Shown here: positions 6,667 through 42,795 of the stretch, in pieces
Layout of the letters: every line of letters begins with the position of its first letter
Numbering within the stretch: the first letter of the stretch is position 1
NCBI RefSeq assembly: GCF_052425735.1
Contig: NC_135759.1
Span: forward strand, 32,798,001-32,862,000
Direction of reading: 5' to 3'
Source of the DNA: Oculina patagonica
Taxonomy: Eukaryota
Length of the DNA: 64,000 bases
Position numbers and translations under genes: made by a program
Notes under the pieces: model-generated
Seen by the model: only the letters and a program-made list of their open reading frames with translations
Databases searched by the model: none
What the model was told of the DNA's origin: nothing

Positions 6667-6777
6667 AATTTGACGAATGTTCCAGCAGTCCATGTCTGAA
6701 TGGTGGAACCTGTACTGATGGAGTTAATAACTTTACGTGTTCTTGTCCTTCTCCATTTTTTGGAAACCAGTGTCAAG
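6667..6777 (+). CDS. EGF-like exon A (cassette 1)
   Basis: [37 protein letters not shown]; 111 nt, phase 1-1. Confidence 0.92.
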
Positions 6778-7603
6778 GTATTTATTGCTCTGTGAATAGT
6801 TTTGGAATAAAACTGACCCGAATGCATGGAGATGCACGTAACGGACCTAGATTGTATTGTGAGCTTAAAATTTCATTCAACCAACCATTTAATGGTCTTT
6901 ATAACCTGCCTAGTAAAAACAAAATTCGCATCTGACTGGTTAAAAGCTTACTCGATTTTTACTTTTGATCGTTCTATGTACATGTACCATTCAGCCTGGG
7001 AAATGATCGGCCTCGTTTTATTATTACTGACCCTCCTAAATCCTATTGTTCTCTATATGAAATATATCGACGATTGCAGCCACGAACTAAAAGATCAATG
7101 TGGAAAACAACTGAAATCGTCGATGTGACGCAGAGAGGGTCAATAATTATATCAGATAATAACTTCGGCTCACAGGAGCATTGGGTATGTTGCAAACAGC
7201 TGAGGCCGCATTATGTATTAAATATGGCAATGCTCGGACAATACGTAGTCTATTAACATGAAATAATTGGGCAAAATGTAAGTTGTTAGCACACTACAAT
7301 AATTATTTGTAGTCTCACTCCAATTTGGCATTCCTTTGGAATGTTTATCAACCAAACGTTTCTAGCTAAAATTTTCCAACACCTCATCTTGTTACATATA
7401 GTGTTATAGCAAAAAGACGCAAACTCTTTAACGACTTCAACTTCTCTCACAGAAGCAGATGAATGTAAGTCCAGTCCTTCAACACAGGGCACAGAAAAAC
7501 ACACTACATACCTATCTCTCGTCACTTGTGTCACAAAAGGGCAAAGAGAGCCCTTTTGTGTGCAAGGGGTTTTTACAACATCAGTTATCTCTTTGTTTTA
7601 AAG

Positions 7604-7714
7604 AATATGACGAATGCTCCAGCAGTCCATGTCTTAACGGTGGAACTTGTGTTGATGGAGTTTACAACTTTACTTGTGTTTGTCCAGGCGTGTATATTGG
7701 ACAACGTTGTGAAG
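7604..7714 (+). CDS. EGF-like exon B (cassette 1)
   Basis: [37 protein letters not shown]; 111 nt, phase 1-1. Confidence 0.92.
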
Positions 7715-40741: not shown

Positions 40742-41282
40742 TTTAGCATAATAACTCGCTGACCGTCTACTAGGTAGTCGCGCTATCTGATTGGCTACGC
40801 AGGTGACGTCTATTTAACAATTAGACGGCAAGCTCGAGGTTTCTACCGGCTGATAGTTGGCTCGGGGCTTCGCCCCTCGCCAACTATCAAAAGCCGGTAG
40901 AAACCGAGAGCGAGCCGTCTGATTGTGTTAGCATAACCCACTGACCGATCTATTAAACTCAGAATATCGCTAGAATCGATTCATTGAAGGTTTTGATTGA
41001 TAAAATTCAGCGAAGACTAAGCGCGCGCTCCGAGAGCCTACTACGGATCGATAGTAGGCACCTGTGTAGCCAATCAGATTGCGCGATTACCAATAGTAGG
41101 TCAGTGTGGTTATGCTAATGTTCGATAGACCGCTCTCAGTATAGAGCGTGTGCCAAGTTGTTCGCTGAATTCTATCCACATAACCTTCAATAAATCAATT
41201 CTAGTGATATTCTGTGTTTGATAGATCGTTCAGTGGGTTATGCAAAAATAATAGGCCGATAGAAACCTCGAGCTTGCCGTTA
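40742..41282. repeat. Nested imperfect palindromes (non-autonomous element-like)
   Basis: Hairpin 40816-40930 centred on GGGGCTTCGCCCC; AGCATAACCCACTGA motifs in both orientations. Confidence 0.6.
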
Positions 41283-42144
41283 AAGTATCAAAACCTTGTG
41301 CTGTGAGTTGCAAGTAAAATAGAACTATCCTTGCTTTTGCAACGTTCGAGGCACGTTGCTACGTTTCCTTTGTAAATCTCAACTTGCAAGGCAATTTTGT
41401 TAAAATGAGCCAGCCAGAACGCGCTCTTCGCTCTCAGGAGATTTCAAGATGATAAATTCCAGCGGGCGCCTTTAAATTCAAGTTTAAATAGTTGCGAACG
41501 CGCGACACCCCCTCTGCAACCCGATGTATTTTCTACTGGTATGCGGTCAATACAGTTCATTAGCAGGTTTTGGTTATTTACTTCGCTGTGTATGACACGC
41601 CGCTTGGGCGTGTCCCTTGGGTATCCCTGATTGGTTTGAGTATCCAACCATTATTCCTTTGGTGTGTATTTTTTGCAGTATTTAAGAAGAAAATAATTTA
41701 CGTTCGTTTAAGCGTAGCGAATTAGAACGTAATAATATTTTTCAACTGTCTTCGTTGCGTTGCAAGTTGCAAACAGCCCATGCGTGAGAAAAAGGAAAAC
41801 AGTTTATTGATAATTTTTAATTTATTTGAATTGCATGGTATAAAATACAAATCTCCAGTGACAGAACTGGTTGAATGTTGTCTTATTTTCTTGAGATTTC
41901 TGTCGTCAATTTTGAAGACTGTTGCAATTATTTAGAAGGGATGGTTAACACTGATAAACAGTAATTATTAGCTGAAGTAAGTTATCGCTACGAAAACGCT
42001 GTTAACTGTTATCACTGACACTCAGATAAATATTGCGACTGCTCGCTAAAAATAATACAATTATCTAATACCGATTTCTTGTTTTGATGGTTTTATTAAG
42101 CTTGATTAATATCTTGAAAGTACACACTTTTGCTCGTTTACCAG

Positions 42145-42795
42145 GTTTATTGCGACATGTCAGGAAACGCAGGTGGATGGACACTCATTGCACGGTTTTC
42201 AAACGCTGATGCGAAAAACTGGATGAGAGATGATGCTTACTGGTGGTACGATGTTCAATCTTCCCAGGGGTCCCCTACAAGCACGTCAGGTAACTATGAC
42301 ATGATATCGGAAGCGTTCTGGAGAGTTAGTGGGAATGAGATTAAAATCACACGCAGCGACGATAGTTCACACACTGCCCTCCTCCGTACATATACCAACT
42401 GCTTAAGTGGAAACACCCTCAGAGGACTTCTATCCAGCTATGGCAGGTTCACTTATCTTAACTACTGGTCTAACAACAAATGCCTTAAAGGGTGTCCAGT
42501 GTATTATGGAGGATCGTATAGTTCCACTGAAGGATTCAGTCAAGCACACTGTAACGGCAATATCCAGAGCACCAACGACATTGGTTTTTGGTGTCAATGG
42601 AGTGGTGATGGTTCAGTGATGATGTTTGGAGGAGGAGGAAGTGTATGTAGCCGAGCAGATCACGGTCTCGGGATCACTGAAAACAATGGTGGAGGCGCGT
42701 TTGATGACCAGGGAACAGGAGAGTATGATTTCGGAGATGAAGCCCATAGTTATTCTCCCACTTCTTCTTACTCCCTGAATTTGTGGATTCGTTGA
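42145..42795 (+). CDS. Terminal exon: fibrinogen-related / intelectin-like domain
   Basis: ccAG/VYCDMSGNAGGWTLIARF...LNLWIR-TGA; phase-0 acceptor matches the FBG_N exon donors; 216 aa open. Confidence 0.9.
   Translation, partial: VYCDMSGNAGGWTLIARFSNADAKNWMRDDAYWWYDVQSSQGSPTSTSGNYDMISEAFWRVSGNEIKITRSDDSSHTALLRTYTNCLSGNTLRGLLSSYGRFTYLNYWSNNKCLKGCPVYYGGSYSSTEGFSQAHCNGNIQSTNDIGFWCQWSGDGSVMMFGGGGSVCSRADHGLGITENNGGGAFDDQGTGEYDFGDEAHSYSPTSSYSLNLWIR

Follow-up and report, generated by a model that had tools for sequence, protein, structure and literature searches.

When a block of three exons has been copied in tandem inside a gene, which of the copies can be read together in one mRNA, and is the choice between them ever used? 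This question is raised by a LePin-like multi-lectin gene of the stony coral Oculina patagonica, which lies in a 64,000-nucleotide (nt) stretch of a 529-Mb assembly (G000:C2:32798001-32862000, here called the window; coordinates are window positions unless a C2 or genome position is named). The gene starts ~3.3 kb upstream of the window and runs to ~43.1 kb within it. H-lectin-like exons, a Kazal exon (835-1131), further H-lectin-like exons, an exon for a C-type lectin-like domain (CTLD), and a single epidermal growth factor exon (EGF1) are followed by two more EGF exons and the leader exon of a fibrinogen-related domain (A, B, and N; cassette 1), by a second copy of these three (A', B', and N'; cassette 2), and by one last coding exon, FBG_C (C) (Table 1). 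We report that the reading frame admits exactly one of the two leaders per mRNA, that the duplication is genuine, and that the copy of the gene in this assembly carries a frameshift upstream of both cassettes.

Table 1. Exons and duplication units of the multi-lectin gene
Feature	Position	Strand	Description
CTLD exon	4737-5107	+	371 nt versus 375 nt in four paralogs; 4-nt deletion after base 4926
EGF1	5846-5956	+	111 nt, phase 1-1; single (not duplicated)
EGF-A (A)	6667-6777	+	111 nt, phase 1-1; Pfam EGF, E = 6e-9
EGF-B (B)	7604-7714	+	111 nt, phase 1-1
FBG_N (N)	14890-14981	+	92-nt leader exon of the fibrinogen-related domain, phase 1 to 0; open only when joined straight to 42145
EGF-A' (A')	24063-24173	+	111 nt, phase 1-1; 7/111 differences from A (2 residues)
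EGF-B' (B')	26672-26782	+	111 nt, phase 1-1; 11/111 differences from B (3 residues)
FBG_N' (N')	38910-39001	+	Second copy of the 92-nt leader exon, phase 1 to 0; 8/92 differences from N (2 residues)
FBG_C (C)	42145-42795	+	Last coding exon, starts in phase 0; 216 codons plus TGA at 42793-42795
Duplication unit 1 (A, B, N)	6062-21841	+	Colinear high-scoring segment pairs (HSPs) with unit 2 (self-BLAST)
Duplication unit 2 (A', B', N')	21842-39664	+	Colinear HSPs with unit 1 (self-BLAST)

AG and GT flank all eight exons from EGF1 to C, and the duplicated pairs (A/A', B/B', and N/N') show zero indels and zero stops; exon order, coordinates, splice sites, and phases agreed throughout with the first-pass annotation of this DNA, which had also described the duplicated exons as open. 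No exon other than the N-type leader takes the frame from phase 1 to phase 0; exactly one copy of it, joined directly to FBG_C, is therefore needed for an open mRNA. When N was joined to A', as the annotation had done, translation ran on through GYSFQ NLMNAPAVHV and stopped 10 codons past the join, and joining N to B' or to N' likewise led to a stop. Six exons between EGF1 and C are optional; of their 64 possible combinations, all of which were enumerated, 20 were open (4 with N and 16 with N'), and every one of the 20 has exactly one leader, immediately before C. Inclusion of all exons resulted in a first stop at codon 153 of 463, and skipping of both leaders resulted in a stop at codon 207 of 402 or at codon 133 of 328. 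The earlier statement that only one leader can be used is thus exact and complete.

N and N' are homologous by tandem duplication, are equal in a length that is not a multiple of three, and share entry and exit phases; double inclusion or double skipping gives premature stops, and single inclusion is open. They are therefore a frame-incompatible, mutually exclusive exon pair, and A' and B' can ride only with N'. The two leaders are 91% identical, with homologous flanks at 92%, and two other exons lie between them. In N' coordinates, the eight sites that tell the leaders apart are 38911, 38919, 38923, 38935, 38938, 38950, 38985, and 38998. Their peptides differ at 2 of 31 residues, both changes being conservative, so the sole real difference between the products of either choice is the number of EGF repeats.

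The nature of the duplication was examined by self-comparison of the window. The segments of unit 1 that matched unit 2 (6062-6262, 6327-6783, 7434-7813, 8078-8436, 9009-9186, 14582-15033, and 21049-21175) are colinear, and the units meet at a simple head-to-tail junction (~21841/21842). Each unit has a private insertion: ~5 kb upstream of N in unit 1 and, in unit 2, 9.6 kb of transposon-rich DNA (29100-38754) that ends 155 nt upstream of N' and contains reverse-transcriptase-like open reading frames (ORFs) at 29290-30057 and 35421-36206. Where the introns can be aligned, they show 193 substitutions in 1785 bases (~11%) and 50 gap openings. The only run of N letters in the window (59571-60070) lies outside the locus, which is gap-free from 6 to 43 kb. 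At the DNA level, three N-like exons were found genome-wide: N', N (93%), and that of an upstream paralog, gene d (88%). B and B' are mutual closest relatives (90.1%, followed by gene d at 83.8%), which places the duplication inside this gene; A and A' are each about as close to the A exon of gene d as to one another. The locus is thus a genuine head-to-tail intragenic tandem duplication. A scenario in which cassette 1 once owned an FBG_C that was later lost was rejected, since the duplication ends ~1.3 kb downstream of N and no FBG_C remnant was found in 15-24 kb. The intron between N and A' also contains a 1.2-kb inverted repeat of 98.4% identity (15595-16801 and 19772-20983) that encloses no exon.

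Next, selection on the two cassettes was examined. Their exons differ by 26 substitutions in 314 bases and by no indels, versus 8.8 gaps predicted from the intron rate (probability of none, 1.5e-4, or ~0.012 if only one copy was free to decay). By the Nei-Gojobori method, 18 differences are synonymous and 8 nonsynonymous, with a synonymous divergence (dS) of ~0.32 and a ratio of nonsynonymous to synonymous divergence (dN/dS) of 0.10 over both cassettes together (Fisher, 7e-8). A model in which one copy evolved neutrally (omega, ~0.5) was rejected (P = 5.5e-4). When the changes were polarized by gene d, both lineages were constrained (9 synonymous and 5 nonsynonymous changes in cassette 1, P = 8e-4; 8 and 2 in cassette 2, P = 1.5e-4). 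A and B of cassette 1 were constrained on their own (P = 0.005). The dN/dS comparison, which the first-pass annotation had proposed as a check on the duplicated exons, was uninformative for N alone (3 synonymous and 2 nonsynonymous changes, P = 0.10; no selection signal).

Gene conversion has left marks on the same exons. Offsets 25 to 34 of B' carry A-type letters, an apparent conversion tract from an A-type exon. A-type sequence is also found in the 5' third of both B and B' and in the intron just upstream (6535-6748 versus 7477-7685, 88%), and the B exons of other paralogs differ there; this pattern indicates that an A-to-B conversion preceded the cassette duplication. With the caveat that conversion imposes, it seems that A, B, A', B', and N' were translated through most of the period after the duplication, which requires mRNAs that skip N.

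Both cassettes lie downstream of a lesion. When the CTLD exon was aligned with those of four paralogs (copy 2, gene b, gene d, and the downstream gene), one 4-column gap was found, unique to this gene. Its effect is loss of the frame and a TGA in EGF1, near 5876. None of the nearby alternative donors restored the frame. Skipping of the whole CTLD exon, which would join the exon ending near 4460 to 5846, kept it, both neighboring exon borders being in phase 1. Apart from the CTLD exon, every exon of the gene is open, starting with the first H-lectin-like exon and ending with FBG_C. Owing to the deletion, neither leader route gives a full-length protein in this assembly unless the CTLD exon is skipped. 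The small number of private changes in the CTLD sequence past the deletion marks the lesion as recent. The first-pass account of the gene therefore held in its frame logic but had missed this upstream deletion, an instance of how frame logic built from exons alone can overlook an upstream lesion. An unplaced contig of the same assembly (G000:C108:4392-4766) holds an intact 375-nt CTLD exon 93% identical to that of this gene, with no match to FBG_C on that contig.

To what extent is the locus transcribed? Logan contigs aligned to 38600-44500 came from one run, X1, which contains 97% of the FBG_C words, and from two runs of other organisms with weak matches. X1 is RNA-like: the intron bin just upstream of FBG_C had a depth of 2 versus 129 in the exon, spliced joints were present, and coverage of N' ended at the N' borders. 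A 980-nt X1 contig matched 42142-43077 with 1 mismatch and carried 44 upstream letters unlike the adjacent intron. Its match begins at a CAG that both leaders share, and the letter that precedes it is not the C present there in N and fits N' (T at exon offset 88). FBG_C is thus transcribed and spliced at 42145, and the silent locus that the annotation had named as a possible refutation was not borne out. The FBG_C splicing in X1 most likely comes from N'.

A second X1 contig carries a joint (38997 to 42141) expected of an exon that ends like N (CATT-CCAG, with C at exon offset 88), with at least 43 letters on each side. Given that length, overlap in 31-mers with the exact-match FBG_C contig would be expected if the two FBG_C parts were alike, and the FBG_C part of this second contig must therefore differ from ours. 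X1 contains at least four FBG_C-like contigs that are 86 to 90% identical to ours (the nearest paralog in the assembly is 83% identical), and the N-type joint also occurs in X5, a run of a different organism. For these reasons, the joint is not taken as proof of splicing from N to C; the contig probably comes from a relative absent from the assembly. From the 86 to 90% contigs, it seems that either cluster content differs between individuals or the X1 sample contains a second lineage. A protein search with FBG_C gave no match above 86% identity and, within the length range of the collection, no transcript products of the same species. The closest relative, a contig from a TARA metagenome (86%), has EGF, N, and C once each; it was set aside as a comparator for the duplication, being too short to inform on it and looking like an orthologue of another cluster member.

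With modest confidence, we favor a reading in which the duplication is real, N' is the main productive leader, N has a minor or poison role, and the reference copy has been freshly disabled. The most likely productive route would skip N and use N' with A' and B', and probably with A and B, to give three to five EGF repeats. Two roles are then conceivable for N: a minor alternative to N' in joining FBG_C, or an unproductive ("poison") exon, since placing it before A' would lead to a premature stop and presumably to nonsense-mediated decay (NMD). Unless the CTLD exon is skipped, the reference copy would be a young pseudogene or a null allele.

Several points weigh against this reading. The Logan contigs show presence only and give no junction counts. 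The splice sites of N are perfect and almost the same as those of N', so that constitutive skipping of N is not expected a priori. In X1, letter combinations in the left half of this exon type (C at 38950 together with A at 38938, and G at 38938) match neither reference exon cleanly. The selection tests draw on 26 differences, some of them clustered, and at least one apparent conversion tract, that in B', inflates their result; exons that are not used could still look constrained if they received conversion from functional paralogs, and conversion may import variation that has already been filtered. Finally, the 4-nt deletion may be polymorphic or, less likely, an assembly error. Two of the alternatives, a pseudogene and a regulated switch, overlap with the favored reading.

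It is possible, if doubtful, that the locus is decaying: a pseudogene in a cluster under birth-and-death evolution, with cassettes that are intact only because they are young or have been refreshed by conversion and with transcripts that are unproductive. The stop that the CTLD deletion puts in EGF1 would fit, as would the conversion tracts visible between EGF exons and the wrecks strewn across the cluster, namely, stop-bearing FBG_C fragments (genome positions 32716536 and 32786650), a fragment consisting of B, N, and C only, and the CTLD exon of gene d (C2:32765143-32768826, upstream of the window), which is truncated and apparently chimeric, its start resembling that of an EGF exon. However, the dS and dN/dS values and the absence of indels amount to long constraint after the duplication, every exon but the CTLD exon is open, and the lesion is recent. 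FBG_C is moreover transcribed and correctly spliced, and skipping of the CTLD exon would keep the frame.

The first-pass annotation had proposed a regulated either/or switch that changes the spacer length between the CTLD and the intelectin-like domain: splicing of N to C (14981 to 42145, skipping 27 kb) and of N' to C would both be productive, with exclusivity enforced by frame and NMD and with 3 versus up to 5 EGF repeats. The exclusivity stood, and skipping of N is supported by the constraint on A', B', and N'; use of the N-to-C splice did not find such support, and we consider the switch as a whole unlikely. In its favor, the frame logic is exact over the 64 paths, both cassettes are intact with low dN/dS, and N retains its splice sites and ORF. 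An X1 contig with the N-type letter (C at offset 88) is joined to an FBG_C-like start, and in X1 the starts of two right-hand exon variants both lie 30 letters ahead of the diagnostic offset 75, which is the pattern expected of joint expression of N-type and N'-type exons. NMD-backed fidelity of mutually exclusive exons whose lengths are not multiples of three is, in addition, established in Caenorhabditis elegans (PMC4165533). However, the N-type contig must differ from our FBG_C, the FBG_C-like contigs of X1 have no counterpart in the assembly, and X5 has this joint as well. No selection signal was seen for N alone, the choice between leaders that differ by two conservative residues is in itself of little consequence, and the upstream CTLD frameshift applies to this reading too. 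Nor was long-range intron complementarity found that would be able to loop out N or cassette 2. The search gave nothing significant for such a role, its only match being a palindromic element present in both units, in the introns after B and B' (8272-8321 and 27275-27323; reverse-complement match of 82% over 51 nt, E = 2e-5). Although pairing of the two elements would exclude N, A', and B' as a loop, each element is more likely to fold into a local hairpin.

A stronger version of the switch, which we regard as distinctly improbable, is that both routes are in working use. The 92-nt leader would then be a frame-coded selector between a short stalk (3 EGF repeats) and a long one (up to 5, via N'), the joining of N to A' would be an NMD-coupled throttle, and the individual that was sequenced would simply carry a null allele in the form of the CTLD deletion. 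Very improbable indeed is the remaining alternative, which the first-pass annotation had named as a refutation, that the two units are alternative haplotypes misplaced in tandem: although the cluster is repetitive and the assembly gap adjoins a 5'-only gene copy, 8 to 11% substitutions, 50 intron indels, and multi-kilobase private insertions with different transposons are far beyond allelic divergence and make the units too diverged for two haplotypes, no gap interrupts them, their junction is simple, and neither N nor N' has a further genomic copy.

Frame-enforced exon choice is already known from other genes. In C. elegans, 14 of 19 clusters of mutually exclusive exons whose lengths are not multiples of three are examples of such exons born from tandem duplication, with fidelity backed by frame and NMD (Kuroyanagi et al. 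2014, PMC4165533), and NMD removes the double-inclusion and double-skipping products of such pairs (PMC4165533). FGFR2 IIIb/IIIc is given there as a further example (Jones et al. 2001, cited in PMC4165533). Like those exons, N and N' are homologous, equal in length (92 nt, not a multiple of three), and so arranged that both or neither gives a premature stop while one keeps the downstream frame. Unlike them, N and N' result from the copying of a three-exon block rather than of a single exon; a distance of 24 kb separates them, and the two EGF exons in that interval, both frame-neutral, are compatible only with N'. Their peptides are, furthermore, almost the same, so that the choice would alter repeat number and not exon content. 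A likeness to poison exons and regulated unproductive splicing is also evident, as N followed by A' leads to a premature stop 10 codons on, well upstream of the last exon junction; however, N as a putative poison exon would be a by-product of duplication and not a conserved regulatory exon.

If both routes were used, the gene would be a clean natural case in which a multi-exon tandem duplication made alternative splicing obligatory by reading-frame arithmetic alone, and the length of the stalk between lectin heads would vary in a family of lectins that has been linked to recognition between coral and alga. What the locus mostly illustrates at present is how a cluster of coral lectins evolves by birth and death.

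The domain set of the gene was compared with that of LePin, a secreted Kazal/lectin/EGF protein of Xenia endosymbiotic cells (Hu et al. 2020, PMC7332420; bioRxiv 10.1101/2022.12.13.520278). LePin-like proteins occur in symbiotic anthozoans (bioRxiv 10.1101/2022.12.13.520278). Pfam searches identified Kazal_2 (2e-10), Lectin_C (4e-10, in the first half of the CTLD exon), and EGF (6e-9), and a Pfam search of the exon ORF at 1479-1970, in which H-type lectin repeats were sought, gave no match. The Kazal, C-type lectin, and EGF set of LePin-like lectins is thus present, with the CTLD frameshifted in the assembly copy, and the setting, a tandem cluster of similar genes in a coral genome, is a further likeness. 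Unlike LePin, the Oculina gene ends in a fibrinogen-related, weakly intelectin-like domain, and it has an internal three-exon duplication and a CTLD frameshift.

To judge from profile matches, the first part of that fibrinogen-related domain is supplied by the N exon. In a Logan transcript protein from a related coral (P0007), A-type, B-type, N, and C are contiguous in that order, and the protein matched Pfam Fibrinogen_C with 27.9 bits (cut-off, 22) over profile positions 4 to 58, a span that covers the N exon and the start of C and includes the first cysteine pair. The FBG_C exon alone scored 14.8 bits (profile positions 32 to 59). A profile search of PDB matched intelectin-1 (E = 0.011) and XEEL (0.032), both weakly and with only ~35 residues aligned, and a single-sequence search of PDB with the fibrinogen-related domain gave no match. 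An AlphaFold model of the domain formed by N and C had a predicted local distance difference test (pLDDT) score of 46.8, too poor for use.

The surrounding cluster is under birth-and-death evolution, as seen in internal duplications, gene conversion, and the fresh frameshift. The canonical paralog has the arrangement E1-A-B-N-C, and the order A-type, B-type, N, and C is kept in all paralogs. Within the window, a sister copy (49189-59522) has a full 5' half (H-lectin-like exons, Kazal exon, intact 375-nt CTLD exon, and EGF1) followed by the 500-N gap at 59571-60070; no A, B, N, or C exons were found before the next complete gene, ~16 kb on (C2:32873470-32882565), and the copy either has its 3' half hidden in the gap or is a 5'-only duplicate. 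Gene d has an internal duplication of its own, of EGF1 and EGF-A. The compact gene b (C2:32731994-32733008) has four consecutive 111-nt EGF exons (E1, A, A2, and B), and its A2 exon shares the GHRCQ ending of A'. The family thus shows natural variation in EGF number.

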